64,000 bases of DNA from Anaeramoeba ignava BMAN. Taxonomy: Eukaryota > Protista > Anaeramoebae. Both the position numbers and the translations under genes were made by a program. The stretch's first letter is position 1; every line of letters starts with the position of its first letter. The stretch lies in assembly GCA_028826165.1 (NCBI GenBank), contig JAPDFW010000103.1, forward strand, positions 496,001 through 560,000. Reading direction: 5' to 3'. The notes under the pieces were generated by a model that saw only the letters and a program-made list of their open reading frames with translations, did not search any database and was not told the origin of the DNA. This document shows positions 18,235 to 52,700 of this stretch, in pieces.

Positions 18235-21112
18235 TTAGAAATAATTTCGGATTGCTTTTGCAAATGGAATTGATGCATCAACAATAATAAATTTATCAGA
18301 TTCTTTAACTAATTTGATTTGACTCATTGGATGTGAATTAGTTGTAATAATTTTAGTAATTTTAGAATCAATTAATTTTTGGCAAACTGCTTCTGAAGTA
18401 ATTGCAAAATGTGAAATAACTGTATAAATTGATAATGCTCCATTATTTAAATAAGCATCAACTGCATGAAATAATGTTCCTCCACTTCTAATCATATCAT
18501 CATAAATAATAACATGCATTCCTTTAACTTCTCCAATTACTTCATGAACTTCAGTTTCTTCCATTTTTCTTGTTTTTCGAACAAATGCAACTGGTGTGTT
18601 ATTGAATTTCTTTGAATATGATGAAACCCATGCTGTTCTTCCTAAATCTGCTGATGCAAACATAAAAGTTCCTGGTTCTAAATTTAATTTTCTAACTCCT
18701 TCTGCAAGAATTTGTTCTCCATAAACTTCAAATGCAATTGTTGACTTTTTAATTTTAATTTTGAATATTTTAGATATTTTGGATATTTTAGATATTTTAA
18801 ATATTTTAGATATTTTGGATATTTTGGATATTTTAGATATTTTGAATATTTTGAATATTTTGAATATTTTGAATATTTTGAATATTTTGAATATTTTGAA
18901 TATTTTGGATATTTTAAATATTTTAGATATTTTAAATATTTTGAATATTTTGAATATTTTGAATATTTTGGATATTTTGGATATTTTGGATATTTTGAAT
19001 ATTTTGAATATTTTGAATATTTTGAATATTTTGGATATTTTAGATATTTTGAATATTTTGAATATTTTAGATATTTTAGATATTTTGGATATTTTGAATA
19101 TTTTGAATATTTTGGATATTTTGGATATTTTGAATATTTTAAATATTTTGAATATTTTGGATATTTTAGATATTTTGGATATTTTAAATATTTTGAATAT
19201 TTTGAATATTTTGAATATTTTAGATATTTTGGATATTTTAGATATTTTAAATATTTTAGATATTTTGGATATTTTAGATATTTTGAATATTTTGAATATT
19301 TTGAATATTTCATTTAAATTTAAATTTATTTTAATTTAAATAAAAGTCAAATAAAAGTAAAATAATAAAATTGAAATGTTTTTGTTTGATTGTTATTATT
19401 AAATAAAGAATTAAATTACTTCAAAATAATGGACAATTCCAGAAACATGAAGATCAAATAAGAAAAATATATTTCCTTCTCCATCTTTTGGGATTGAACT
19501 TAAAATTCTACAATTTGTTTTGCAAGTTACAACCTATTATTTAATTTTAATTTTAATTTTTAATTTTAATTTCAATTTTAATTTTAATTTTAATTTTAAT
19601 TTGAATTTTAATTTTAATTTTAAATTTTAATTTTAATTTTAATTTTAATTTTAAATTTAATTTAAATTTTAATTTTAATTTTAAATTTTAATTTTAATTT
19701 TAATTTTAATTTTATTTTTAATTTTAATTTTAATTTTATTTTTAATTTTAATTTTAATTTTAATTTTAATTTTAATTTTAATTTTTAATTTTGATTTTAA
19801 TTTTAATTTTAATTTTAATTTACCTCTCCTGATTTTGTTGCTCTTTCCAGTAATCAATAAAAAAATGGAAAAATAAAATTCCATTAATTATATCAAGGAA
19901 AAAAATATTTGGATAATAATATTATTAGTATTAATATTATTTGAAAATTATTATTATTATTATTTAAATTAAAGAATGAAATTAAAATAAAGGATATTTG
20001 TTGAATAACCCATAAATGGAATAACAAAAATTCTTCTTCTAGTTCCATAAGCAGAAAGAGCCATTCCAACACGAACAAGTTCTAAAAAGTCACTATCATA
20101 AGCAGTTGAAGAAACAAAAATAACAGTTTTATCAAGAAGATCAGATTTCTTATCAACATCAACTCTATAATATTCTTCTCCACCAGCAAATTGCTATTTA
20201 AAATATTATTTAGAATATTTAGAATATTTAGAATATTTAGAATATTTAGAATATTTAGAATATTTAGAATAATTAATATTATTTAGAATATTTAGAATAA
20301 TTAATATTATTTAGAATATTTAGAATATTTAATATTATTTAGAATATTTAATATTATTTAGAATATTAAGAATATTTAGAATATTTAGAATATTTAGAAT
20401 ATTTAATAATATTTAGAATATTTAATATTATTTAGAATATTTAGAATATTTAGAATATTTAGAATATTTAATATTATTTAGAATATTTAGAATATTTAGA
20501 ATATTTATAATATTTAGAATATTTAATATTATTTAGAATATTTAGAATATTTAATAATATTTAGAATATTTAGAATATTAAGAATATTAAGAATATTAAG
20601 AATATTTAGAATATTTAGAATATTTAGAATATTTAGAATATTTAGAATATTTAGAATATTTAGAATATTTAGAATATTTAGAATATTTAGAATATTTAGA
20701 ATATTTAGAATATTATTTAGAATATTTAATATTATTTAGAATATTTAGAATATTTAGAATATTAATTAAAATTATTTCAATAATATTTAACATTCCAAAT
20801 TTTCATTATTCCAATTTTAAATTAAAAAAGGAAAAAAAGAAAAGAAAAAGGAAAAAAAAAAGGAAAAAAGGGGATAATGTTTGAAACAAAATAAACTCAA
20901 AATATAATCAAGAATATTACTTTTCTATCCATTGCAACTCTTTCAAAATTATCTGTTCCTAACTTTTCAAGTAAAAGATCTGCAAAGTATTCCCCACTTT
21001 TAGTTGAAAGTATCATCACTTTATTTTTACCATTCTTTTTTTGAATTATTGGTGATTTTGGTTCAATTTCAGTTTCAATTTTAGTTTCAATTTTAGTTTT
21101 TTCGTCTGACAT
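18235..21112 (-). CDS. prs: Ribose-phosphate pyrophosphokinase (PRPP synthetase), bacterial-like, copy 1; 5 exons
   Basis: Exons 21112-20921, 20193-19998, 19849-19824, ~19533-19420, 18744-18235 give ...[11 protein letters not shown]...[34 protein letters not shown]...[15 protein letters not shown]...ASADLGR...[13 protein letters not shown] (PRPP-binding loop). Confidence 0.92.
19850..19997 (-). other. AT-AC (U12-type, minor spliceosome) intron, 148 nt, in PRPS copy 1
   Basis: On the minus strand it starts ATATCCTTT, contains TTTTCCTTGAT and ends TTAC. Removing it fuses A+TG and restores GYST-M-ERA in frame. Confidence 0.88.
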
Positions 21113-21543: not shown

Positions 21544-24500
21544 TTAGAAATAATTTCGGATTGCTTTTGCAAATGGAATTGATGCATCAACAATAATAAA
21601 TTTATCAGATTCTTTAACTAATTTGATTTGACTCATTGGATGTGAATTAGTTGTAATAATTTTGGTAATTTTAGAATCAATTAACTTTTGACAAACTGCT
21701 TCTGAAGTAATTGCAAAATGTGAAATAACTGTATAAATTGATAATGCTCCATTATTTAAATAAGCATCAACTGCATGAAATAATGTTCCTCCACTTCTAA
21801 TCATATCATCATAAATAATAACATGCATTCCTTTAACTTCTCCAATTACTTCATGAACTTCAGTTTCTTCCATTTTTCTTGTTTTTCGAACAAATGCAAC
21901 TGGTGTGTTGTTGAATTTCTTTGAATATGATGAAACCCATGCTGTTCTTCCTAAATCTGCTGATGCAAACATAAAAGTTCCTGGTTCTAAATTTAATTTT
22001 CTAACTCCTTCTGCAAGAATTTGTTCTCCATAAACTTCAAATGCAATTGTTGACTTTTTAATTTTAATTTTGAATATTTTAGATATTTTGGATATTTTAG
22101 ATATTTTAAATATTTTAGATATTTTGAATATTTTGAATATTTTGAATATTTTGAATATTTTGGATATTTTAGATATTTTGGATATTTTAAATATTTTGGA
22201 TATTTCATTTAAATTTAAATTTATTTTAATTTAAATAAAAGTCAAATAAAAGTAAAATAATAAAATTGAAATGTTTTTGTTTGATTGTTATTATTAAATA
22301 AAGAATTAATTTACTTCAAAATAATGGACAATTCCAGAAACATGAAGATCAAATAAGAAAAATATATTTCCTTCTCCATCTTTTGGGATTGAACTTAAAA
22401 TTCTACAATTTGTTTTGCAAGTTACAACCTATTATTTAATTTTAATTTTAATTTTAATTTTAATTTTAATTTTAATTTTAATTTTAATTTTAATTTTAAT
22501 TTTAATTTTAATTTAAATTTAAATTTTAATTTTAATTTTAATTTTAATTTTAATTTTAATTTTAATTTTAATTTTAATTTTAATTTTAATTTTTAATTTT
22601 AATTTAAATTTTAATTTTAATTTTAATTTTAATTTTTAATTTTAATTTTAATTTTAATTTACCTCTCCTGATTTTGTTGCTCTTTCCAGTAATCAATAAA
22701 AAAATGGAAAAATAAAATTCCATTAATTATATCAAGGAAAAAAATATTTTATTTGGATAATAATATTATTAATATTAATATTATTTGAAAATAATTATTA
22801 TTATTATTATTTAAATTAAAGAATGAAATTAAAATAAAGGATATTTGTTGAATAACCCATAAATGGAATAACAAAAATTCTTCTTCTAGTTCCATATCCA
22901 GAAAGAGCCATTCCAACACGAACAAGTTCTAAAAAGTCACCATCATAAGCAGTTGAAGAAACAAAAATAACAGTTTTATCAAGAAGATCAGATTTCTTAT
23001 CAACACCAATTCTATAATATTCTTCTCCACCAGCAAATTGCTATTTAAAATATTATTTAGAATATTTAGAATATTTAGAATATTTAGAATATTTAGAATA
23101 TTTAATAATATTTAGAATATTTAGAATATTTAGAATATTTAATAATATTTAGAATATTAATTCAAATTATTTAGAATATTTAGAATATTTAATAATATTT
23201 AGAATATTTAGAATATTAATTCAAATTATTTAGAATATTTAGAATATTTAAAATATTTAGAATATTTAGAATATTTAGAATATTTAATAATATTTAGAAT
23301 ATTTAGAATATTTAGAATATTAATAATATTTAGAATATTTAGAATATTTAGAATATTTAGAATATTTAATAATATTTAGAATATTTAATAATATTTAGAA
23401 TATTTAATATTATTTAGAATATTTAATATTATTTAGAATATTTAATATTATTTAGAATATTTAATAATATTTAGAATATTTAGAATATTTAATATTATTT
23501 AGAATATTAAGAATATTTAATATTTAGGAATATTTAGAATATTAAGAATATTTATAATATTATTATTTAGAATATTTAGATTATTTAGAATATTTAATAT
23601 TATTTAGAATATTTAGAATATTTAATAATATTTAGTATTATTTAGTATTATTTAGAATATTTTAGAATATTTAATAATATTTAGAATATTTAGAATATTA
23701 TTTAGAATATTTAGAATATTTAGAATATTTAGATTATTTAGAATATTTAGATTATTTAGAATATTTAATAATATTTAGAATATTTTAGAATATTTAGAAT
23801 ATTTAGATTATTTAGAATATTTAATATTATTTAGAATATTTAGAATATTTAGAATATTTAGAATATTTTAAAATTATTTAGAATATTTAATATTATTTAG
23901 AATATTTTAGAATATTTAGAATATTTAGAATATTTAATATTATTTAGAATATTTAAAATTATTTAAAAATATTTAGAATATTTAGAATATTTAGAATATT
24001 TTAAATATTTAATATTATTTAGAATATTTAATAATATTTAGAATATTTAATATTTAAGAATATTTAGAATATTTAATATTATTTAGAATATTTAATAATA
24101 TTTAGAATATTTAGAATATTTAGAATATTTAGAATATTTAGAATATTTAGAATATTTAATAATATTTAGAATATTTAGAATATTAAGAATATTAAGAATA
24201 TTTTGAATATTATTTAGAATATTTTGAATATTATTTAAAATTATTTCAATAATATTTAACATTCCAAATTTTCATTATTCCAATTTTAAATTAAAAAAAA
24301 AATAAAAGAAAAAGGGAAGGAAAAAAAAAGGAAAAAAGGGGATAATGTTTGAAACAAAATAAACTCAAAATCTAATCAAGAATATTACTTTTCTATCCAT
24401 TTCAACTTTTTCAAAATTATCTGTTCCTAACTTTTCAAGTAAAAGATCTGCAAAGTATTCCCCACTTTTAGTTGAAAGTATCATTGTTTTACTTTTGCAA

Positions 24501-37746: not shown

Positions 37747-40036
37747 TCAACATTTTTAAAATTGATTCCACAAAACACCAACCAGAATAAAAAGATAACA
37801 ACCTAAAAAAGATAAACCAAAAAATATTATTTAAATTAAAATTAAAATTAAAATTAAAATTAAAATTAATAATTAAAATTAAAAATAATAATTAATAATT
37901 AAAATTATAATTAAAATTAAAATTAATTAAAATTAAAATTAAAATTAAAAATAAAATTAAAATTAAAATTAAAATTAAAATTAATATTTTTTAGAAATAA
38001 TTTATATACAAGAATAATAACTAAAAGAATTAAAAGCATTTTCTTGTCTTTCCACCACATTTTTCTTTTGAGTGTTGTTGCTTGCTTTTTGAAAATATAT
38101 GATTTTTTGTTTATTTTATCTGTTTTATCAATTAAAGTATCTAATTTTCCTCCTCTTTGAACTATTTTTTCTAAATTTTCATCCATAATACTCTTTAATT
38201 CATCCAATTCTTTTTTTGTTTTCAAAATATTATCATAATCTTTTTCATTTGAAAAATAATTCTAAAATAATTATAAACATTATAAATATAAATATTATAA
38301 ATATAATAAATATTATAAATATTATAAATATTATAAATATTATAAAAATATTATAAAAAATATTATAAATCATTATAAAATATTATAAATATTATAAATA
38401 TTAAAATAAATATTAAAAATAAATATTATAAATATTATAAATATTATAAATATTATAAAAAATTATAAAAATAAACATATAATATAAATATAAATATTAT
38501 AAAAATAATAAATTATAAAAATAATATATAAATATTATATAAAATAATTATAAATAATTAAAAATAAATTAAATAAATAAATAAATATTATAAAATAAAT
38601 ATTATAAATATAAAATTTTAAATAAATATTATAAAATAAATATTATAAATAAATATTATAAATATAAATATTATAAATATAAATATTATAAATATAAATA
38701 TTATAAATATAAATATTATAAATATAAATATTATAAATATAAATATTATAAATATTATAAATATTATAAATATTATAAATATAAATATTATAAATATAAA
38801 TATTATAAATATTATAAATATTATAAATATTATAAATATTATAAATATTATAAATATTATAAATATTATAAATATTATAAATATTATAAATATAAATAAA
38901 TTTGTATGAAAAATTACAACTTCTCTTTCTAAAATTAAATCAAATTCTTCAATTCTTTCATTATTTTCAGCTTGTGTTAAATACTTTCTCTCAAATTCAT
39001 TTCTAATAACTGCTAAAAAGGCAAATGGAATTCTTTTTCCAAACATTTCATCAGCAGCACAAATATAAATAACTTCATCTTCAGCTTTTCTAACAAGAAA
39101 GTTATAACTTTAAACAAAAAATAAACAAAAATAATTTAAATTAAAATTAAAATTCATTTATAAAATTATAAAATTAAAATTAAAATTCATTTATAAAATT
39201 CATTTAAAAATTAAAATTCATTTATAAAATTAAAATCAAAAATTAATATTAAAATTAAAATTAAAATTCATTTATAAAATTAAAATTCATTTATAAAATT
39301 CATTTATAAAATTAAAATTCATTTATAAAATTCATTTATAAAATTAAAAATAAAATTCATTTATAAAATTAAAAATAAAATTAAAATTCATTTATAAAAT
39401 CAAAAATTCATTTATAAAATTAAAATTCATTTATAAAATTAAAATTCATTTATAAAATTCAAATTAAAATTCATTTTATAAAATTAAAAATAAAATTAAA
39501 ATTCATTTATAAAATTAAAATTAAAATTAAAATTCATTTATAAAATTAAAATTAAAATTAAAATTAAAATTAAAATTCATTTATAAAATTAAAATCAAAA
39601 TTCATTTATAAAATAAAATTCATTTATAAAATTAAAATTAAAATTAAAATTAAAATTAAAATTAAAATTCATTTATAAAATTAAAATTAAAATTAAAATT
39701 AAATTCATTTATAAAATTAAAATTCATTTATAAAATTAAAATTCATTTATAAAATTCATTTATAAAATTATTAGAATTTGAATTTGTTAATAAAAACCTT
39801 TCATAAACATAACAAACTCTTGAATTTTCTGTTCCAATTGCTGCAAGAATTGCTTCAGCTTTTTCAAGTAAATTTTCTTTTTATTTTTTTCAAATTGAAA
39901 AGAAAAAAATTTTTTTTTTCAAATTTGTTTATTTTGAGAAATAGAATTTTGCAAAATTAAGTTTACCATGTCCTTTAACAGCATAAAAAGAATAAATTGC
40001 TTTGGGACTTCCAACTAAAGCACAAAGAATTGACAT
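37747..40036 (-). CDS. VAMP7: VAMP7-like longin R-SNARE; 5 exons
   Basis: MSILCALVG...YNFLVRKAEDEVIYICAADEMFGKRIPFAFL (longin); MDENLEKIVQRGGKLDTLIDKT (R-SNARE, central Arg); RKMWWK, TM helix, then FCG. The stop position is approximate (likely 1-nt homopolymer loss near 37753). Confidence 0.88.
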
Positions 40037-43100: not shown

Positions 43101-44642
43101 AAATTAAAAATATAAATAAAAATTAAAATCAAAATTAATATTAATATTAAAATATAAAATGATTTAGATAGCAAAGAACCAGAACCACTATTCGAAATTC
43201 ACGAATCTCTTCAAAATCATCAAATTATTAATTACCAAACATCAGAAAACTTACAATGGCTTATTGTAGTCGGAATCACTCAAAAAGAAAATCAAATCTT
43301 TGGATCATCTCAATTATACTCAATTGAAAAACAAAAAACTCAAATAATTCAAACATCAGCTTGTGATTTGGCTTCTGTTTTTTTGCAAAATTTCAATAAA
43401 TCAATACTTATTTTTTCATGTATTATGAAAACTCCAACAGAAACAAAACTTTATTCAATGGAATTTGGAAATGATTCAACAACAGAAAACAAATTCAAAC
43501 GATACACGCATCCAGTAGAATTTGATTCATTTCCAACTCAAGATTTCCCAATTGATTTAAAAATTTGTGAAAAATTTTCTGTTATTTTTGTTCTTACAAA
43601 AATGGGATACTTATTCGTCTTTGATTTGCTAACAGGAATACTTTTTCTTAAAAAGCAAATATCCAATCATTCACCTCTTCATGCTGTTTTCAATAAAAAT
43701 AAAGATGGAATAATTGCAGTTTTCAAATCAGGAGAAATTTTAACAATTTCGGGAAAAAATCCAAATCTAAAAATCCACAACTTAAACCAATTCAATCAAC
43801 TTGTAGACGCAATAATTATTCAGGACTCAGACACAACAAGATCTATTTTTATTGATAAATTTGAGGTTCTTTTTAATCAAGGAAAATACCAAGAAGCTGC
43901 TAAAATTATTGCAGATTCGCCAGATCAATTTTTACGAACACAAGAAAATTTCAAGAAATTTCAAGAAGCAATCAAAAATGAAGGTGAAAAACCACCAGAA
44001 ATCATTTATTACCAGCTATTTCTTGCGCAAAATAAACTCAATTCTTTTGAATCAATTCATTTTGTTCGGAAATTAATTGAAATTCAAAAAAAAGAATTGA
44101 TTGAAAATTTTGTTAAAGAAGACAAACTTGAATTATCTCAAGAATTGATGAATATTTTTGATTCCGATCCTGAACTTTCTCAACTATTCAAAAAGAAACA
44201 AATTTCAAATGACAGTATAGTAACAAAACTAATTGAACAACAAGAATTCCTAAAGCTTCTTGATTATGGGAAAAATTTTTTGATGGGTTTAAATTATTCC
44301 GAATTGTTGAAAAATGTTTTGGAACAAAATGAACAAATTGCAGAAAATTTCGCTAAGTTTTTATTGAGCGAACAAAAGGAGAAAGATATATATTTAATTG
44401 ATGTTCTAAATGTTTTTGATATTTTTGCTGATGCAAAAAAAATTAAATCTTTGACAGCAGTTTTTTTGGATGTTTTGAAAGACAATAAAGAAGAAGAAGG
44501 TTATTTGCAAACAAAATTATTGGAAGTGATTATAAATTCGGGTCATATTCAAGTAGCTGATGCAATAATAAAAAACGAGATGTTTTCGCATTATGATCGT
44601 TTTACAATTGAATTACTTTTGAAAAATCAAACAAATTTTTAA
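40163..44642 (+). CDS. Clathrin heavy chain-like protein, truncated (terminal beta-propeller, linker and start of the leg only); 3 exons
   Basis: Exons 40163-40421, ~40515-40664, ~43168-44642. Motifs [26 protein letters not shown]...[53 protein letters not shown]...[15 protein letters not shown], then stop. This corresponds to roughly the first 620 residues of clathrin heavy chain. Confidence 0.85.
40680..43150 (+). repeat. 2.5-kb intronic array of alternating AAATAT and AAATCC hexamer blocks
   Basis: Visible; fills intron 2 of the clathrin-like gene. Confidence 0.9.
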
Positions 44643-44772: not shown

Positions 44773-44843
44773 GGGGGATTAGTTTAAAGGTAAAATGTGT
44801 TTACGTCATGAACAAGCTCCGAGTTCGAATCTCGGATCCTCCA
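44773..44843 (+). tRNA. tRNA-like gene, anticodon GTC (Asp), atypical loop ACGTCAT, G3-U70 acceptor
   Basis: GGGGGAT/ATCCTCC-A acceptor; GTTT/AAAT D-stem; TGTTT/GAACA anticodon stem; CCGAG-TTCGAAT-CTCGG T-arm. Confidence 0.72.
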
Positions 44844-44924
44844 CATTTAGATTTGAATTTGATTAATTCAATTTTTTTTTTGGAATAAATTTTATCATTT
44901 TCATTCTCTTTTTTTTTTGGAATT

Positions 44925-46020
44925 AAATTATTGATTAAATTATTAATTAAATTATTTATTAAATTATTTATTAAATTATTAATTAAATTATTGATTAAAT
45001 TATTTATTAATTTATTTATTAAATTATTTATTAAATTATTTATTAAATTATTTATTAAATTATTTATTAAATTATTTATTAAATTATTTATTAAATTATT
45101 TATTAAATTATTTATTAAATTATTTATTAAATTATTTATTAAATTTTTGATTAAATTATTAGGATTAAATTATTTATTAAATTATTTATTAAATTTTATT
45201 TAAATTATTTTAAAATAAAATCATTTATTAAATTATTTATTAAAATTATTGATTAAATTATTAATTAAATTATTAATTAAAAATTTTTGATTAAATAAAA
45301 ATTATTTATTAATTTGATTAAATCAATTTTTTGAACAAATTTTTTTTTTGGATTATAAATTATTTTAAATTCTAAAATTTTTATTAAATTATTAAAAAAT
45401 TAGTTTAAATTAAAGATTTAAATAATTATTAGCCTCCAAATTATTATTAAAATTAATTCGGGTTCAAATAATTAAATTTTATTTAATTAAATTATTAATT
45501 AAATTTTTTATTTATTAATTTTATTAAATTATTAATTAATCTTTTTTAAAAATTAAATTATTTAAAATTATTTTATTTAATTTAAATTATTAAATTAAAA
45601 AATTAAATTATTAAATTAAATTATTATAAAATTATTTTTTAAATTGATTAAATTATTTTAGTTAAAATTAATTAAATTATTAATTAAATTTATAAATTAA
45701 ATTATTTATTAAATTATTTATTAAATTATTTAAAATTATTAATTTTTTATTAATTAAATTATTAAATTATTTAAAATTAAATTTAAATTATTAAAATAAT
45801 AAAATTAAATTAAATTCCAAATTGATTTATTAAATTATTTATTAAATTTAATTTATTAAATTATTTATTAAAGATTATTTAAATTATTTTATTTAAATTA
45901 TTTAATAAAATAAATTAAATTAAATTATTAATTAATTTAAATTATTTATTAAATTAAAATTAATTAAATTATTAATTAAATTATTAATTTTAAATATTTA
46001 TTAAATTATTTATTAAAATT
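44925..46020. repeat. 12-bp repeat (TTAAATTATTTA)n, degenerating downstream
   Basis: Clean units at 44925-45200, noisy afterwards. Confidence 0.75.
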
Positions 46021-46035
46021 AGGGAATAAATTAAA

Positions 46036-46103
46036 AAGGGGATAATTTAAAGATAGAATGTAATGCTAAGTTTAAGATTCGGGTTCAAATCCCGACTTCT
46101 CCA
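46036..46103 (+). pseudogene. Degenerate tRNA-like copy (intact T-arm and 3' acceptor strand, eroded 5' half)
   Basis: TCGGG-TTCAAAT-CCCGA-CTTCTCC-A followed by a T-run; lies in a noisy region. Confidence 0.5.
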
Positions 46104-46188
46104 CACCTTTTTTGTTAAATTTATAATTATAAATAATCTATTTTTTGAATTTTTTTTTGCAAAAGGATTTGTTTAATTTAAATTAAAA

Positions 46189-46260
46189 TCAGAAGTAGTA
46201 TAAAGGTAAGTATGTGGGCTTTTCACGCCCATGATCCGAGTTCGAATCTCGGCTTCTGAG
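46189..46260 (+). tRNA. tRNA, anticodon TTC (Glu) on an Asp-type body, discriminator G
   Basis: TCAGAAG/CTTCTGA; GTAT/GTAT D-stem; TGGGC-TTTTCAC-GCCCA; CCGAG-TTCGAAT-CTCGG; downstream oligo-T. Confidence 0.82.
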
Positions 46261-46609
46261 CAATTTTTTTTGGAATAAATAATAAAAAGTGGAATAAATC
46301 TAATTGAAGTTGATTTAGAATATTTTTTTGAAATAAATAAATCTAATCAATCTAAATTAAATTGATTTAAATATTTTTTTTGAATTAAATAATAAAAAGT
46401 GGAATAAATCTAATTGAAGTTAATTTAGAATATTTTTTTGGAATAAATAATAAAAAGTGGAATAAATCTAATTGAAGTTAATTTAGAATATTTTTTTGAA
46501 ATAAATAAATCTAATCTAATCAATTTAAATTGATTTGAAATATTTTTTTGAAATAAATAAAAAATGGAATAAAAGTTGTAATTAATTAGAAAATTGTGAA
46601 TATTTTTGT

Positions 46610-46617
46610 TATAAAAG
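46610..46617 (+). promoter_or_regulatory. TATAAAAG box upstream of a tRNA gene (also at 44721, 47245, 47666, 49110)
   Basis: The same octamer lies 43-52 bp upstream of five tRNA-like genes. Confidence 0.6.
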
Positions 46618-46657
46618 ACACTAATTTATAAAATTTTAAAAGAAATTTGGATTAAAA

Positions 46658-46729
46658 CCGGAAGTAGTATAAAGGTAAGTATGTGGGCCTGTCACGCTCA
46701 AGATCCGAGTTCGAATCTCGGCTTCTGAG
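46658..46729 (+). tRNA. tRNA-Asp(GTC)-like; C1-A72 mismatch, G3-U70
   Basis: CCGGAAG/CTTCTGA-G; GTAT/GTAT; TGGGC-CTGTCAC-GCTCA; canonical T-arm. The D-stem, loop and G73 resemble eukaryotic tRNA-Asp. Confidence 0.82.
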
Positions 46730-47292
46730 TAATTTTTTTTGAATAAATAATAAAAAGTGGAATAAATCTAATTGAAGTTAATTTAGAATATTTTTTTGAA
46801 ATAAATAAATCTAATCAATCTAAATTAAATTAATTTGAAATATTTTTTTTGAAATAAATAATAAAAAGTGGAATAAATCTAATTTAAATTGATTTAGAAT
46901 ATTTTTTTGAAATAAATAAATCTAATCTATCTAATTGAAGTTAATTTAAAATATTCTTTGATTAAATAATAAAAAGTGGAATAAAACTAATTGAAGTTAA
47001 TTTAGAATATTTTTTTGAAATAAATAATAAAAAGTGGAATAAATCTAATTTAAATTGATTTAGAATATTTTTTTGAAATAAATAATAAAAAGTGGAATAA
47101 ATCTAATTGAAGTTAATTTAGAATATTTTTTTGAAATAAATAAATCTAATCAATCTAATTTAAATTAATTTGAAATATTTTTTTGAAATAAATAAAAAAT
47201 GGAATAAAAGTTGTAATTAATTAGAAAATTGTGAATATTTTTGTTATAAAAGACACTAATTTATAAAATTTTAAAAGAAATTTGGATTAAAA

Positions 47293-47363
47293 TCAGAAGT
47301 AGTATAAAGGTAAGTATGTGGGCCTTCACACTCAAGATCCGAGTTCGAATCTCGGCTTCTGAA
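47293..47363 (+). tRNA. tRNA-like gene with a 1-nt-short anticodon arm (TGGGC-CTTCAC-ACTCA); anticodon undetermined
   Basis: Body nearly identical to 46189 and 46658; the loop is 6 nt, or 8 nt on a 4-bp stem. Confidence 0.62.
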
Positions 47364-47714
47364 AAATTTTTTTTGATTAAATAATAAAAAGTGGAATAAA
47401 TCTAAATTAAATTGATTTAGAATATTTTTTTGAAATAAATAATAAAAAGTGGAATAAATCTAATTTAAATTGATTTAGAATATTTTTTTGAAATAAATAA
47501 ATCTAATCTAATCAATTTAGATTAATTTAAAATATTCTTTGATTAAATAATAAAAAGTGGAATAAAACTAATTGAAGTTAATTTAGAATATCTTCTGAAA
47601 TAAATAAATAATAAAAAGTTGAATAAAACTAATCAAAATTAATTGGAAAAATTTCAAATATTTGTTATAAAAGATGCTATTTTGAAAAATTTTAAAAAGA
47701 AATTTCAATTTAAA

Positions 47715-47785
47715 TCAGAAGTAGTTCAAAGGTAGAACGTGCGCCTTTCACGCCCAAGATCCGAGTTCAATTCCCGGCTTCTGAA
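47715..47785 (+). tRNA. tRNA-like gene, anticodon TTC (Glu), single mismatches in anticodon and T stems
   Basis: TCAGAAG/CTTCTGA; GTTC/GAAC; TGCGC-CTTTCAC-GCCCA; CCGAG-TTCAATT-CCCGG. Confidence 0.75.
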
Positions 47786-48088
47786 TAAATTTATTTTTTT
47801 GGAATTGATTTTTAATTTGTTTTGGAATTGATTTTTAATTTGTTTTGAATTGATTTGGAATTGATTTGGAATTGATTTTTAAATTGATTTTTAAATTGAT
47901 TTTTAATTTGATTTGGAATTGATTTTTAAATTGATTTTTAAATTGATTTGGAATTGATTTGGAATTGATTTTGTTTAAGATTTCTATTTTAAAATAAAGA
48001 ATAAAAAGTGGAACATAATATTAAATTTAAATGAGGAAGTTTGTCAAAAATTATTTTAAAAAATTTTTTGATAAATAATAAGAAAAAA

Positions 48089-48159
48089 GGGGAAGTATTT
48101 TAAAGGAAGAATGTGTCCTCCCAAAGCACACGGTCCGAGTTCAATTCCCGGCTTCTCCA
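48089..48159 (+). tRNA. tRNA-like gene, anticodon ambiguous (CCA/Trp or CCC/Gly depending on register), G3-U70 acceptor
   Basis: GGGGAAG/CTTCTCC-A; GTGTCCTCCCAAAGCAC arm; CCGAG-TTCAATT-CCCGG; T-run immediately downstream. Confidence 0.65.
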
Positions 48160-48201
48160 CTTTTTTTATCAAAATAAAGGAAAAAGGAAACAAGAAAATA
48201 A

Positions 48202-48272
48202 GCAGAAGTGGTATAAAGGCAGAATACAAAATTACCAATTTTGTGATCCGAGTTCGAATCTCGGCTTCTGCA
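48202..48272 (+). tRNA. tRNA-Gly-like with the unusual anticodon ACC
   Basis: GCAGAAG/CTTCTGC-A; CAAAA-TTACCAA-TTTTG; CCGAG-TTCGAAT-CTCGG. Confidence 0.78.
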
Positions 48273-48981
48273 AATGTTTCTTTTTTGGATAAATTTTTTT
48301 AGAATAATTAAATAATAAAATTAATTAAATTTGAATAAATAATAAAAAGTGGAATAAAACTAATCAAAACCATTTCAATCAACATTAATTTGAATAAATA
48401 ATAAAAAGTGGAATAAAACTAAATCAAGATTAATTTAGAATATTTTCTGAAATAAATAATAAAAAGTGGAATAAAACTAATTGAAGTTAATTTAGAATAT
48501 CTTCTGAAATAAATAATAAAAAGTGGAATAAATATAATCAAAACCATTTCAATCAACATTAATTTGAATAAATAATAAAAAGTGGAATAAAACTAATTCA
48601 AGATTAATTTAGAATATTTTCTGAAATAAATAATAAAAAGTGGAATAAATATAATCAAAACCATTTCAATCAACATTAATTTGATTAAATAATATTAAGT
48701 GGAATAAAACTAATTGAAGTTAATTTAGAATATCTTCTGAAATAAATAATAAAAAGTGGAATAAATATAATCAAAATCATTTCAATCAACATTAATTTGA
48801 TTAAATAATAAAAAGTGGAATAAAACTAATTGAAGTTAATTTAGAATATCTTCTGAAATAAATAAATAATAAAAAGTTGAATAAAACTAATCAAAATTAA
48901 TTGGAAAAAATTTCAAATATTTGTAATAAAAGATGCTATTTTGAAAAATTTTATAAAGAAATTTCAAATTAAAAATTTAAA

Positions 48982-49053
48982 TCGGAAGTAGTATAAAGGT
49001 GAGTATATGGGCTCTACACGCCCAAGATCCGGGTTCGATTCCCGGCTTCTGAA
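48982..49053 (+). tRNA. tRNA-like gene, anticodon TAC (Val) on an Asp-type body, C33, G3-U70
   Basis: TCGGAAG/CTTCTGA-A; GTAT/GTAT; TGGGC-TCTACAC-GCCCA; CCGGG-TTCGATT-CCCGG. Confidence 0.75.
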
Positions 49054-49152
49054 TAAAATTATTTTTTTTTAAATTAAAATTCTTTTTTGTTAAATTAAAT
49101 TAATTAGATTATAAAAGAAGAACTTTTAAAAATTTTAATTTATAAAAAAAAA

Positions 49153-49225
49153 GGAGAGATAGTATAAAGGAAAGAATGTGAGCCTGTCAAGCTCAAGATC
49201 CGGAGTTCGAGTCCCGGTCTCTCCA
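49153..49225 (+). tRNA. tRNA-like gene, anticodon GTC (Asp), discriminator A, 1-nt T-stem bulge
   Basis: GGAGAGA/TCTCTCC-A; TGAGC-CTGTCAA-GCTCA; CCGGAG-TTCGAGT-CCCGG. Confidence 0.72.
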
Positions 49226-49768
49226 AAAACGATTTTTTTGTTGTTTTTTTTTTTGAAGTAATTTTAATTTAATTTTAATTTTAATTGTAATTTTATCTAA
49301 TTTAATTGTAATTTCATTGTAATTTTAATTGTAATTTCATCTAATTAATTTTAATTTCTATTTAAATGGTTAAATTGGTTGTTAATTTGTATTAATTTTT
49401 TTTTTTGATAAATGAAAAATCTTTTCTTGTTTTTTGTTGTTGTTGTTTTAAAATTAATCGGTTTTTATCCGTTAAAAAAGATTATTTGAAAAAAAAAAAG
49501 AAAAATGATTTTTGGAAAGGAAAAAAAATGAAAAAAAATGAAAAAAAAAATTTGAATTAAAAAGAAGTTATTTGATTAGTTATTAAATGAGTTAAATGAT
49601 TTAATCTGATCTAGATTTTCCCCAATTAAGAAAACGCCTAAATAATTTTTATAAAAAAAAAAGAGAGAAAATTAAATTAATTTTTTTTCCGATTTTAAAA
49701 TTAAAATTAAAATTAAAATTATAATTAAAATTAAAATTAAAATTAAATTTAAATTTAAAAATGGAAAC

Positions 49769-52700
49769 TCACTTCATTATCAACTTTTCCAAATTCATAA
49801 AAGGTTGTTCAACCAAGAAATAAAGAATAAAACCAATTAAATAGCAAGTACCAACATTAGCAATAGAATTATAAAAAATAGGAGTAGTATCATAATCGAA
49901 CAAAATTCTTGAGCTAAAAATGACCATTAGCATAACAACTGGATGAGAAACATAAACAGAATAAGTTAATCTTGAAATAGGAACCCAAATTTTAAAGAAC
50001 AAAAACTTTTTAAAAGCAGAAGGAGTATCATGGAAGTAAACAAAGATAAGCAATATAAGCCCAACAGCAAGACCCCACAAAAGTTTTGACAAACCAATAT
50101 AAACAGCGTTTTGAGCGTTATTCCAATTATTTCCGAGATTTTTGAAGTTATCATAAGGAGAAAATTGAACCACTGCCATCGTTGCAAATGCGACAAGGAA
50201 AATAATATTCGACAACGCATAGTGAATCTTTGTGATTCTTTTCTTCTTCTCAAATGCTTTTGGTTTGTCAACAAGTTTTTCTTGTTCTTCAATCTCTAAA
50301 ATTTCTGATCGATTTGGTTGAAGTTTTTTCCAACTGAAAGTTGCCATTGCAAATCCAACTCCTACAAGATAAGGCAATATGCGTGTGTATGGTTTCGTGT
50401 ATATTTTGTTCCTGTATGTGTTGTATTGGTCTTCGTCTAAAAGAGTGAAGTTGATGTTGTAGTGATCAACAAGGTAGAAATTAAGTGCAAGTGATATTAT
50501 TCCAAATACTCCGACAATTGAAAATCCAATCCATTGATTTATTATGTATAAAACTGAGAATATTGGTGCAATAATGTAAAATTGAACATCGTTTGCGAGA
50601 TACCAACACCAATCTGAATAATATTATTAAATTAAATTAAATTAAATTAAATTAAATTAAATATTATTATTAAATTAAATATTATTATTGAATTAAATAT
50701 TATTATTAAATTAAATATTATTATTAAATTAATTTTATTATTGAATTAAATATTATTATTGAATTAAGTATTATTAAATTAAATATTATTATTAAATTAA
50801 ATTAAATTAAATTAAATTAAATATTATTATTAAATTAAATTAAATTAAATTAAATATTATTATTAAATTAAATTAAATTAAATTAATATTATTATTAAAT
50901 TAAATATTATTATTATTATTGAATTAAATATTATTATTAAATTAATTTTTATTATTGAATTAAATATTATTATTGAATTAAATATTATTATTAAATTAAA
51001 TATTATTATTAAATTAAATATTATTATTAAATTAAATATTATTATTATTATTAAATTAAAATATTATTATTAAATTAATTTTATTATTGAATTAAATATT
51101 ATTATTGAATTAAATATTATTATTAAATTAAATATTATTATTAAATTAAATATTATTATTAAATTAAATATTATTATTAAATTAAATATTATTATTATTA
51201 TTAAATTAAATATTATTATTATTGAATTAAATATTATTAAATTAAATATTATTGAATTAAATATTATTATTATTATTATTAAATTAAATATTATTATTAT
51301 TATTATTAAATTAAATATTATTGAATTAAATATTATTAAATTAAATATTATTGAATTAAATATTATTAAATTAAATATTATTGAATTAAATATTATTATT
51401 ATTATTATTCACTTACTCATGCATTCATCGTTGTAATCTTTTGGATAAAAATTATTAAAAAAGAATAAAGTTGAATACCAATATTTGTTACAAGTGTTTT
51501 TTAATCCATCTTTAACAAGATGATAATATGGACCATTGCTAAGATGAAGAGATAAATTGTTATAAATGATTAAAACAAAAAAAAGAACAGGAAAAAGACG
51601 GAAAAATCTATGAAAAAAGAATTTTAAATTAAATTTTGAATTGAATTGATTTTTGAATTGAATTGATTTTTAAAATTGATTTTTGAATTGATTTGATTTT
51701 TGAATTGATTTGATTTTTAAATTAAAATTAATTTTTGAATTGATTTTTGAATTGAATTGATTTTACCGATGAATGTAATATTTCCAAAAACTGAATTCCT
51801 TTTTTTTTAGTTTGTGAATTGTATAAAAAGTCACAAGAAATCCACTTATAACAAAAAATGTATCTGCTGCAAATTCAGCTCCCATAATAAATTGAAAAGG
51901 CCATTTTGTTGTTGGACCATCCTCAGAAATTACATAAACAATGTTTCTATAACCAGTAACTTCTTGAATTGAGATTGTTTCACCTAATTTTAATTATAAT
52001 TTTATAAATAATTTTAATTTTAATTTTAATTTTGATTTTGATTTTGATTTTGATTTTAATTTTGAATTTTAATTTTGATTTAAATTTTAATTTTAATTTT
52101 AAATGAATTTTAATTTTATAAATAATTTCAAATTTAATTTTAAATTTAATTTTAATTTTAATTTTAAATAATTTCAAATTTAAATTTTAATTTTATAAAT
52201 AATTTTAATTTTATAAATAATTTTAATTTTATAAATAATTTTAATTTCAAATTTAATTTTATAAATAATTTTAATTTTAATTTTAATTTTAAATTTAATT
52301 TAAATTTTAATTTTAATTTCAATTTTAAATATAATTATAATTTTATAAATGATTTTAATTTTAATTTTTAATTATAATTTTAATTTTAATTTTATAAATA
52401 ATTTTATAAATAATTTCAAATTTAATTTTATAAATAATTTTAATTTTAATTTTAATTTTAATTTTAATTTTAATTTTATAAATAATTTCAATTTTATAAA
52501 TGATTTTAATTTGAATTTTAATTTTAATTTTAATTATAATTTTGATTTTAATTATAAATAATTTTAATTTTAAATGAATTTTAATTGAATTTTAATTATT
52601 TACCTAAAATAATCCAAAACATAGATATAATTCTAAAGAAAGAGAAATGACTGAATTCAGGAAAAGGATAAGGTTTATGCATTTTTCTCCAATTTTTGAA

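Follow-up and report, generated by a model that had tools for sequence, protein, structure and literature searches.

The closest described systems are the tRNA gene arrays of Entamoeba, in which nearly all tRNA genes, that is the functional set, are organised as long arrays of repeated units and short tandem repeats separate the genes (PMC2652664). Anticodon-shifted (remolded) tRNA genes are also known in eukaryotes, and the published shifts were defined by conserved cross-species synteny and concern mostly intact genes (Rogers and Griffiths-Jones 2014, PMC3923123; PMC4981973). Families of tRNA pseudogenes that turn over by birth and death are a third type of relative. In addition, some natural tRNAs are mischarged, among them non-Ala tRNAs with G3:U70 and the nematode nev-tRNAs.

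Here we describe ten co-oriented tRNA-like genes on the + strand at 44773-49225, about 4.5 kb of the Anaeramoeba ignava genome, within a 64-kb window (the whole stretch of DNA that was analysed). Like the Entamoeba arrays, the locus lies in an AT-rich anaerobic protist and has co-oriented tRNA genes, complex short tandem repeat spacers, and co-duplication of gene and repeat. However, the functional set of A. ignava is dispersed and identical and does not lie in the array. The array itself is a single short locus of an unrelated lineage (Anaeramoebae, Metamonada), and its ten copies all differ, most of them being defective or having an altered anticodon. Like remolded genes, some copies combine a Glu-type body with GTC or TAC through one substitution; unlike the published shifts, several of them sit in one young tandem family, beside C33, indels and mismatches. 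The locus shares local duplication, relaxed constraint, relics and redundancy with canonical genes with tRNA pseudogene families, but its cloverleaf pairing is unusually retained, its arms are mosaic, and its AAAGG D-loop is common to a second cluster. As in mischarging tRNAs, the anticodon disagrees with the identity of the body or acceptor, and five copies carry G3.U70, two of them with GGG/TCC-A73. In the array, mischarging is a possibility, and G.U is also the expected mutational intermediate.

The initial annotation had claimed about ten co-oriented tRNA-like genes, and this was borne out. ARAGORN called nine + strand genes (at 44773, 46189, 46658, 47293, 47715, 48089, 48202, 48982, and 49153), with the anticodons gtc, ttc, gtc, a short loop, ttc, ccc, acc, tac, and gtc in this order; the list read earlier is the same, with CCA/CCC at the sixth position. 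Rfam RF00005 (gathering cut-off 29 bits) matched 9/10 copies with 31.7-63.7 bits, the lowest score (31.7 bits) being that of a weak tenth copy at 46038-46103. The copy at 44773 was under the cut-off, yet it was called by ARAGORN, and the Rfam scores across the array form a gradient from 63.7 down to <29 bits. Furthermore, a family-specific covariance model (R1, filters off) found exactly these 10 copies in the 64-kb window and nothing beyond them below E = 0.8. The array occupies a 5-kb intergenic gap flanked by a clathrin-like gene and a downstream gene; the neighbouring genes end at 44642 and 49769. The features are as follows.

44773..44844, + strand: copy 1; GTC with C33; perfect cloverleaf; GGG/TCC acceptor end, G3.U70, A73; TATAAAAG at -52; ARAGORN, R1 84.4 bits
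44922..46017, no strand: 12-nt AT satellite of about 90 repeats, separating copies 1 and 2; TRF
45399..45470, + strand: possible eleventh copy, strongly AT-decayed, within the 12-nt satellite; low confidence
46036..46104, + strand: copy 2, decayed relic; 5' acceptor truncated, anticodon arm shortened, GC 36%; Rfam 31.7 bits, R1 63.1 bits
46189..46261, + strand: copy 3; TTC; perfect stems; U33, A37 and G73 as in canonical Glu; Rfam 63.7 bits; minimum free energy (MFE) fold is the cloverleaf
46265..47644, no strand: 58-nt satellite with higher-order periods of 110-224 nt, filling the spacers from copy 3 to copy 6; TRF
46658..46730, + strand: copy 4; GTC (one base from TTC); loop identical to the canonical Asp loop; G73, C1.A72 mismatch, G3.U70; ARAGORN, Rfam
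47293..47364, + strand: copy 5; 6-nt anticodon loop through a one-base deletion; C.A mismatch in the anticodon stem; ARAGORN, Rfam
47715..47786, + strand: copy 6; TTC; two stem mismatches; different D arm; hybrid T arm common to copy 7; Rfam
48089..48160, + strand: copy 7; CCC, or CCA with C33 in an alternative reading; three mismatches; GGG/TCC end, G3.U70; Rfam 40.8 bits
48202..48273, + strand: copy 8, mosaic; ACC; Gly-GCC-type anticodon arm and acceptor end (GCA/TGC, A73)
48328..48896, no strand: 116-nt satellite related to the 58-mer, separating copies 8 and 9; TRF
48982..49054, + strand: copy 9; TAC with C33; perfect cloverleaf; G3.U70, A73; T arm identical to the canonical Gly-GCC T arm; ARAGORN, Rfam
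49153..49226, + strand: copy 10; GTC; one extra T-arm base; GGA/TCC end, A73; TATAAAAG at -43; ARAGORN, Rfam

The possible eleventh copy shares 14 nt exactly with the T arm of copy 2 and 11 nt with the D region of copy 1; its scores lie no higher than the top of the shuffle range, and R1 does not detect it.

The alignment of the ten copies showed the AAAGG D-loop (A14-A16 and G17 invariant; AAAGA in copy 2), a variable loop of 4 nt across the family, a CCGRG T-stem in 9/10 copies, and a GAAG/CTTC acceptor core in 7/10, which agrees with the shared D-loop, 4-nt variable loop, T arm and mostly common acceptor claimed before. The D-loop and T-loop columns (A and B box) are the most invariant, and C36 and A37 are kept in 9/9 readable copies. 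The GC content of the array bodies is 41-50%, that of decayed copy 2 is 36%, and the genome has roughly 15% GC.

In the stems, 93.6% of the cells were paired versus 81.8% in shuffles, and 12 pairs were changed on both sides versus 5.5 expected, a number that 0/500 shuffles reached; as a control, sliding the 3' partner lowered the pairing to 27-52%. All the compensatory acceptor and anticodon-stem pairs quoted in the initial annotation are present. Across the family, 24 deviating cells were compensated on both sides versus 13 unpaired. In addition, four divergent copies (1, 3, 8, and 9; 62-86% identity in the compared pairs) have perfect or canonical-like cloverleaves. However, this compensatory signal is partly due to mosaicism, in which entire arms match other tRNA genes, and to G.U intermediates, not to stepwise compensation.

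The pair table also showed structural defects in 6/10 copies. A 7-nt loop, U33, a purine at 37, and full pairing of all stems, the features of a decoder, occur together in copy 3 alone, the only copy normal in every respect. The other copies deviate by C33 (copies 1 and 9), a 6-nt loop (copy 5), a mismatch or insertion (copies 4, 6, 7, and 10) or truncation (copy 2). The earlier count of two or three copies with C33 is correct, as copy 7 joins copies 1 and 9 under one reading of its loop. A34 was found in one copy (copy 8). G3.U70 was found in copies 1, 4, 7, and 9 and, by alignment, in the relic copy 2; copies 1 and 7 have the full Ala-type acceptor set GGG/TCC-A73. Within the core, G3.U70 is confined to the two copies whose anticodon left TTC.

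The family is unique to this locus: BLAST, a whole-genome covariance model search and an AAAGG-pattern scan found no member elsewhere, and the AAAGG D-loop itself occurs in only two clusters, this window and contig C104. In the contig C104 cluster the body hardly varies, and the anticodon loops measure 6-9 nt. The D-loop AAAGG was absent from every canonical tRNA of the genome that was seen. The nearest relatives elsewhere in the genome, by covariance model, were canonical Glu-TTC (66 bits), Asp-GTC (62.5), and Gly-GCC (61.1), and metagenome scans returned nothing or unrelated bacterial tRNA-Ser genes. A tRNA-derived SINE was rejected, since the copies stop at the acceptor and T-run and occur at this locus only.

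The array is redundant, and every codon concerned is already covered by normal dispersed canonical genes (Asp-GTC x3, Glu-TTC x3, Glu-CTC x2, Gly-GCC x2, Gly-TCC, Val-AAC x2, Val-CAC x2, and Val-TAC). The bodies of canonical paralogs are 100% identical in 9/9 pairs while their flanks are 57-98% identical, a pattern of purifying selection that the array pairs do not show: their bodies are 82-93% identical (7-18% different) and their flanks 82-100%. For instance, the upstream 100 nt of copies 4 and 5 are identical, and their bodies are 93% identical. Sequence constraint on the array is relaxed. The initial annotation had placed the cloverleaf under selection. This is not fully supported: 6/10 copies are defective, and recent duplicates diverge as fast as their flanks, unlike canonical paralogs.

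The phylogeny with genomic tRNAs that had been proposed as a check was run by maximum likelihood. The core copies formed a clade with canonical Glu-TTC, Glu-CTC, and Asp-GTC (support 95/92) and did not group by anticodon class. As had been suggested, the genes are not ordinary isoacceptors; they are one locus-specific family, which apparently descends mainly from a tRNA-Glu gene. Copies 4 (GTC) and 9 (TAC) lay inside the Glu/Asp clade; the TAC copy was not with canonical Val and the ACC copy not with Gly. Copies 4 and 9 have the body of one isotype and the anticodon of another, as in remolded genes. Copy 8 is a mosaic because its anticodon arm is of Gly-GCC type (0.79 to canonical Gly-GCC, <=0.47 to other isotypes, 0.44 to the window copies); its inner acceptor, D loop and T arm are of the family type. 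In the core, the changed anticodons are all one base from TTC, and the minimum changes per site were 0.71 in the anticodon loop, 0.29 in the other body and 0.49 in the upstream flank (P = 0.06, anticodon loop against the rest of the body). Of the earlier proposal, the kept cloverleaf stands through the double changes of the divergent copies, and a free anticodon agrees with a loop that changes at about the flank rate, but diversifying selection found no support.

The repeat unit consists of the gene, its T-run, the satellite and an approximately 110-nt unique upstream segment with TATAAAAG, and the units including satellites are 84-88% identical (self-BLAST). The satellites between the genes have periods of 12, 58, 116, and 23 nt. 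The 58-nt satellite begins at the T-run of each gene, and its high-identity form was found at this locus only. TATAAAAG (TATA) lies at -43 to -52 of 5 copies and occurs 9 times in the whole 64 kb, and a T run of at least 6 follows within about 12 nt in 9/10 copies.

We propose that the array is a satellite-embedded birth-and-death tRNA family under relaxed constraint, patched by gene conversion, with a probability of about 0.5. This family of RNA-polymerase-III tRNA genes, confined to one locus, most likely started from a tRNA-Glu(UUC)-type gene and grew by repeated tandem duplication, with the upstream TATA segment, gene, T-run and satellite as the unit; its present mode would be birth and death with patchy gene conversion. 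The array sequence including the anticodon would be nearly free to drift because every GNN codon is already read by the dispersed canonical genes, which makes the copies redundant. Copy 3 still resembles a working tRNA-Glu. Drift may have produced the one-base anticodon steps (TTC to GTC, TTC to TAC), the Gly-type copy with ACC where canonical Gly has GCC, and also U33C, the one-base loop deletion, the stem mismatches and the T-arm insertion, and one or two copies may have decayed to AT-rich relics. The cloverleaf likely persists through the youth of the copies, arm exchange with intact tRNA genes, and the AT-pressure-favoured path from G:C through G.U to A:U; weak selection for transcription or processing may add to this. 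We infer that duplication and conversion built the array, that it is transcribed, and that most copies have no decoding role. However, the compensation (24 versus 13 cells) exceeds the expectation for simple decay, the bodies have stayed at 41-50% GC in a GC-poor genome, and TATA boxes and terminators persist in old copies. In addition, the invariant AAAGG, common to the C104 cluster and absent from canonical tRNAs, hints at a maintained scaffold.

Alternatively, the copies may be non-decoding tRNA-shaped RNAs of an AAAGG class with two loci (the window and C104), in which selection would hold the L-shape and leave the anticodon loop free. The acceptor, D and T arms would then serve Pol III transcription, RNase P/Z, CCA addition, export or a partner protein. 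The compensated stems of the divergent copies fit this reading, as do the perfect cloverleaves beside abnormal anticodon loops (C33 in two, A34 in one), the D-loop limited to two clusters and found in no canonical tRNA, the steady body and variable loops on C104, and the conserved position of TATAAAAG. However, the bodies of recent duplicates diverge about as fast as the flanks, the acceptor, T or anticodon stems are broken in several copies, and the relics are copies allowed to die. We regard it as possible but rather unlikely.

It is somewhat more doubtful that the variants are working anticodon-shifted tRNAs (copy 4 for Asp, copy 9 for Val, copy 8 for Gly), or that AlaRS charges the G3.U70 copies and puts Ala at Asp, Val or Gly codons. 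The identity rules applied to these three copies are those of the yeast and E. coli systems. By these rules, copy 4 has the canonical Asp loop, G73, and G10.U25, copy 9 has A35, C36, and A73, and copy 8 keeps the Gly acceptor end and A73; C36 and A37 are retained in every readable copy. However, C33 (copies 1 and 9), C1.A72 (copy 4), and A34 in a Gly context disfavour efficient decoding, canonical genes already serve these codons, and each variant is single-copy. To our knowledge, A34 in a Gly context is avoided in nature. AlaRS recognizes the G3.U70 wobble, helped by A73 and G2:C71, and the five G3.U70 copies, in the core only where the anticodon left TTC, are consistent with mischarging; nevertheless, drift from G:C to A:U that starts at the canonical Glu/Asp TCG/CGA end is expected to pass through G3.U70. 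Anticodon shifts are documented in eukaryotes (PMC3923123).

We consider it unlikely that there is a dedicated AAAGG scaffold class of two clusters and about 20 members, whose framework is conserved while anticodon arms are swapped or mutated, with a non-decoding role or a mismatched acceptor identity (e.g. G3.U70). If true, the class would provide regulated mistranslation, or a place where new tRNA identities arise.

A role at the DNA level is very improbable. In this reading the A and B boxes would matter as a cluster of TFIIIC/Pol III sites that forms a chromatin boundary or structural element, with no part played by the RNA; the invariance of the A and B box columns and the filling of the 5-kb gap agree with this, and a structural function has been discussed for the Entamoeba tRNA arrays (PMC2652664). 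However, the acceptor and anticodon stems are not promoter parts and stay paired through double changes, which points to RNA-level constraint or ancestry, so the purely chromatin-based option of the initial annotation fits poorly. That the variants are noise in a repetitive AT-rich long-read assembly of truly fewer, identical genes is hardly credible: the locus is rich in satellites and two defects (the loop of copy 5 and the T arm of copy 10) are single-base indels, the long-read error type, but the differences are mostly substitutions that fall in unique, GC-containing sequence, many of them affecting both partners of a pair in concert or an entire arm, the copies have distinct unique flanks, and the published A. 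ignava assembly combined Nanopore and Illumina (PMC11550330).

tRNA gene arrays, tRNA pseudogenes and anticodon shifts were already known separately; at this locus, one young tandem family combines several shifts with mosaic arms and copies in decay. The host is a little-studied anaerobic protist, and its genome paper contains 0 occurrences of tRNA (PMC11550330). If most copies are silent or uncharged, the locus would represent ordinary gene-family turnover, and annotators should not count the copies as isoacceptors. The G3.U70 copies are natural candidates for the expression and mischarging of intermediates. Furthermore, the locus illustrates how satellite-driven duplication may lead to redundancy and leave a tRNA body free to change its anticodon, with single steps that include Glu to Asp and Glu to Val.

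The tRNA-like array proposed in the initial annotation was found to be real. ARAGORN called nine plus-strand genes in it. Rfam RF00005 also found nine; it did not detect 44773 but picked up a weak tenth copy at 46038 (copies are named by their start positions in the window). Furthermore, R1, a covariance model built from the ten copies, recovered exactly these ten in the window with its filters off, and everything else had E ≥ 0.8. In the family alignment (A2), we saw the described AAAGG D-loop, 4-nt variable loop, and CCGRG T-stem, and the GAAG/CTTC inner acceptor was present in seven copies. The anticodons first listed also matched the copies. In addition, C takes the place of U33 in two copies, 44773 and 48982, and, if its loop is read in one way, also in 48089, in agreement with the two to three replacements reported. 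The proposed covariation of the stems was borne out: 93.6% of the cloverleaf cells in A2 are paired, twelve pairs have changed on both sides, none of 500 shuffles matched the array's pairing, and the pairing was lost when the partner was slid.

The state of the copies varied. Their Rfam scores ranged from 63.7 down to <29 bits, and the relevant canonical genes (normal dispersed tRNA genes of the same genome) scored 59.7-67.7 bits. The ten plus-strand copies and one weak candidate were as follows:

44773, perfect cloverleaf with an odd loop (C33)
46038, relic
46189, the sole fully normal copy
46658, a single defect (C1.A72)
47293, more than one defect (6-nt loop, C.A)
47715, two mismatches
48089, three mismatches
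48202, perfect-cloverleaf class with an odd loop (A34 in a Gly context); its D-stem mismatch also occurs in canonical Asp
48982, perfect cloverleaf with an odd loop (C33)
49153, an extra T-arm base, classed with the copies having more than one defect
45399-45470, possibly a further relic (weak)

The array family is confined to one locus. A BLAST search of the whole genome with copy 46189 gave matches in the window alone. When R1 was run against the whole genome, the ten array copies ranked first, followed by the canonical tRNAs Glu(TTC) (66 bits), Asp(GTC) (62.5 bits), Gly(GCC) (61.1 bits), and Glu(CTC) (60.9 bits). In a search of public metagenomes for relatives, a gapped pattern had no match. 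The T-arm and acceptor pattern had 120 matches there, and these were regarded as unrelated because the commonest were GC-rich bacterial tRNA-Ser-like genes.

When the genome was scanned for AAAGG D-loops suitably spaced from a B box, the only tRNA-like matches were those of the array and of a second cluster, located on contig C104:

L063:4265-8572 = G000:C104:288264-292571 (288-292.6 kb), minus strand, nine tRNA-like genes
L056:349-419 = G000:C104:274448-274518 (274.4 kb), a tenth gene

The C104 genes have a near-invariant body (acceptor, D, and T), with AAAGG or AGAGG in the D-loop. Their anticodon arms are highly variable, with CTG, GTC, CAT, ATC, CCA, or loops of 6 and 9 nt. Canonical Gln-CTG, Met, and Trp genes are present elsewhere in the genome. 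In addition, one Met copy is a hybrid, in which the 5' half of the stem matches its Met neighbour and the 3' half is of the Gln/Trp type, and the TTAGA/TCTAA stem of the cluster is that of canonical Arg tRNAs. G3.U70 is present in the Gln-CTG gene, the first of the Met-CAT genes, and the Trp-CCA gene, the three whose loops are best formed.

The assembly comprises 42.8 Mb in 147 contigs, and its GC content is about 15% overall, falling to 3-5% in some intergenic stretches. The A. ignava genome paper makes no mention of tRNAs (PMC11550330). The array fills the intergenic gap between two genes:

43368-44642, upstream ORF with 99% identity to Anaeramoeba ignava clathrin heavy chain (NCBI name)
ending at 49769, minus strand, downstream neighbour ORF

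No A. flamelloides ortholog of the clathrin-like gene was found within the length range searched. The ORFs of the window encode ordinary eukaryotic proteins (HECT ligase, ankyrin-RhoGEF protein, BTB protein, and AMP-binding enzyme). A foreign or mobile origin of the array (virus, SINE) was rejected in view of its host-like satellite flanks, its ordinary host gene neighbours, and the absence of dispersed copies. Elsewhere in the window, there is a duplication of a segment of about 2.9 kb (19430-19660 and 22325-22555), and three ORFs have an equal length of 142 aa (18235-18663, 21544-21972, and 38618-39046; minus strand). The last one, the only one scanned, gave a weak Longin-domain match.

TATAAAAG was found nine times in the 64-kb window, always on the plus strand. 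In five cases, it precedes an array copy by 43-52 nt; a sixth copy is preceded, at about -57, by a variant differing in one base. Matches to the conserved upstream motif at 19457 and 22352 were rejected as Pol III signals, as they sit in the duplicated coding-like segment and not upstream of Pol III genes. A run of at least six T follows within about 12 nt 3' of nine of the ten copies. Most canonical genes have, instead of TATAAAAG, a AATAAGAAAAA-like motif some 30-45 nt upstream, which is shared by Glu-TTC, Asp, Gly-GCC, Gly-TCC, Val-AAC, and Ala-TGC (loci L035-L054). Thus, the array copies resemble Pol III units whose promoter differs somewhat in type, and the two motifs may represent two types of Pol III upstream promoter. 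From these sequence features, the copies are presumably transcribed.

The spacers consist of satellites with periods of 12, 58 (higher order 110-224), 23, and 116 nt, and the 58-mer starts with the T-run of the gene itself. Units made of gene, satellite, and a unique upstream segment are 84-88% identical, and the high-identity form of the satellite was found at the array locus only. Intergenic DNA of this genome is repeat-rich in general, and every one of the 25 canonical tRNA loci sampled had tandem repeats no more than 60 nt away. Many unrelated canonical tRNA genes (L036, L040, L041, L044-L046, L050, L052-L054, and L059) are directly bordered by a tandem repeat of about 145-170 nt (about two copies). 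Its similarity between loci is 73-80% (E 1e-8 to 1e-29), which suggests a repeat family associated with tRNA genes.

The pattern of conservation in the array is the reverse of that in canonical genes. In nine pairs of canonical paralogs, the bodies are 100% identical and the 100-nt flanks 57-98%, whereas between 46658 and 47293 the upstream flanks do not differ (100/100) and the bodies are 93% identical; for 47715 and 48982, both values are 82%. To explain the differences among the five copies closest to one another, a minimum of 0.71 changes per site is required for the anticodon loop, compared with 0.29 for the remaining body and 0.49 for the upstream flank. Few events were counted in the core copies (46189, 46658, 47293, 47715, and 48982), and the excess of loop over remaining body was not significant (P = 0.06; Fisher 0.14). 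Comparison with the flank indicates that the anticodon loop changes at about the neutral rate, and the non-loop body of the core copies is mildly slower at most. We saw no evidence for diversifying selection on the loop, and this idea was dropped.

In the maximum-likelihood tree (50 tRNAs, about 73 columns, weakly resolved), the core copies formed a clade with canonical Glu-TTC, Glu-CTC, and Asp-GTC (support 95/92). The TAC copy was apart from the Val genes and the ACC copy from the Gly genes; thus, the genes do not each group by their own anticodon class. Within the core, the altered anticodons can each be reached from TTC in one step: a change at position 34 gives GTC, one at position 35 gives TAC, and a one-base deletion gives the 6-nt loop.

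Copy 48202 is a mosaic. Its anticodon arm has 0.79 identity to canonical Gly-GCC, whereas its identity does not exceed 0.47 to any other isotype or 0.44 to any window copy; canonical tRNAs that differ in isotype reach 0.68 at most. Its acceptor end is Gly-like, and its inner acceptor, D-loop, and T arm are of the family type. Furthermore, the neighbours 47715 and 48089 have an identical hybrid T arm with an A.C mismatch, the T arm of 48982 is that of Gly-GCC, and the D arm of 47715 is wholly different, yet perfectly paired. These observations point to exchange of arms. Therefore, much of the "compensatory" signal comes from whole arms matching other tRNA genes, a pattern that gene conversion would be expected to produce. 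The remaining signal includes series of G:C, G.U, and A:U (e.g., pairs 29:41 and 3:70), which would be an easy path under AT-biased mutation.

Canonical genes were sought by scanning for patterns with NNC anticodons in tRNA context and then running ARAGORN on the retrieved loci. In this partial census (a genome-wide Rfam search scored 63 candidates), there were three dispersed genes of Asp-GTC, three intact and one truncated of Glu-TTC, two of Glu-CTC, two of Gly-GCC, one of Gly-TCC, two each of Val-AAC and Val-CAC, one of Val-TAC, and three types of Ala. Judged by these anticodons, every codon that the array copies could read has a normal decoder elsewhere, and the array is thus redundant. 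A partial or damaged copy of canonical Glu(TTC) at L039 (G000:C60:360199-360270) is identical in the anticodon and T-arm region, scored only 37.8 bits with R1, and was not called by ARAGORN. Long (about 30-40 nt), extremely AT-rich introns lie 3' of the anticodon in three tRNA genes:

L071, G000:C79:17846, tRNA-Thr(CGT)
L072, C82:852274, tRNA-Tyr(GTA)
L076, C67:246216, tRNA-Ser(TGA)

A structurally intact 71-nt tRNA with anticodon CTA (reading UAG) was also found (L062:3337-3407 = G000:C71:170836-170906, minus strand), with a T1-A72 acceptor end and discriminator G; the genome's long ORFs look standard-code. Those ORFs and the Anaeramoeba matches speak against a ciliate-type genetic code, an idea prompted by the CUA anticodon.

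A selected, tRNA-shaped, non-decoding RNA family has a modest chance of being the explanation. Four divergent copies keep perfect cloverleaves, the invariant AAAGG signature is common to two loci, the position of the TATA is conserved, and the bodies are high-GC in a 15% GC genome. That individual copies work as anticodon-shifted tRNAs seems rather unlikely. By textbook identity rules, 46658 carries the Asp set (G73, G34 U35 C36, C38, and G10.U25) and 48982 the Val set (A35, C36, and A73). G3.U70, the determinant for AlaRS, occurs in five array copies, and 44773 and 48089 have the full Ala-type acceptor end. A purely DNA-level role of the array is improbable, as the pairing kept in the acceptor and anticodon stems agrees poorly with it. 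Assembly noise is very improbable because the substitutions are coordinated.

The best-supported reading, to which we assign a probability of about 0.5, is birth-and-death of a redundant, satellite-amplified family. A gene derived from tRNA-Glu would have been amplified together with the satellite, and its redundant copies, under relaxed constraint, would have undergone birth-and-death and gene conversion.
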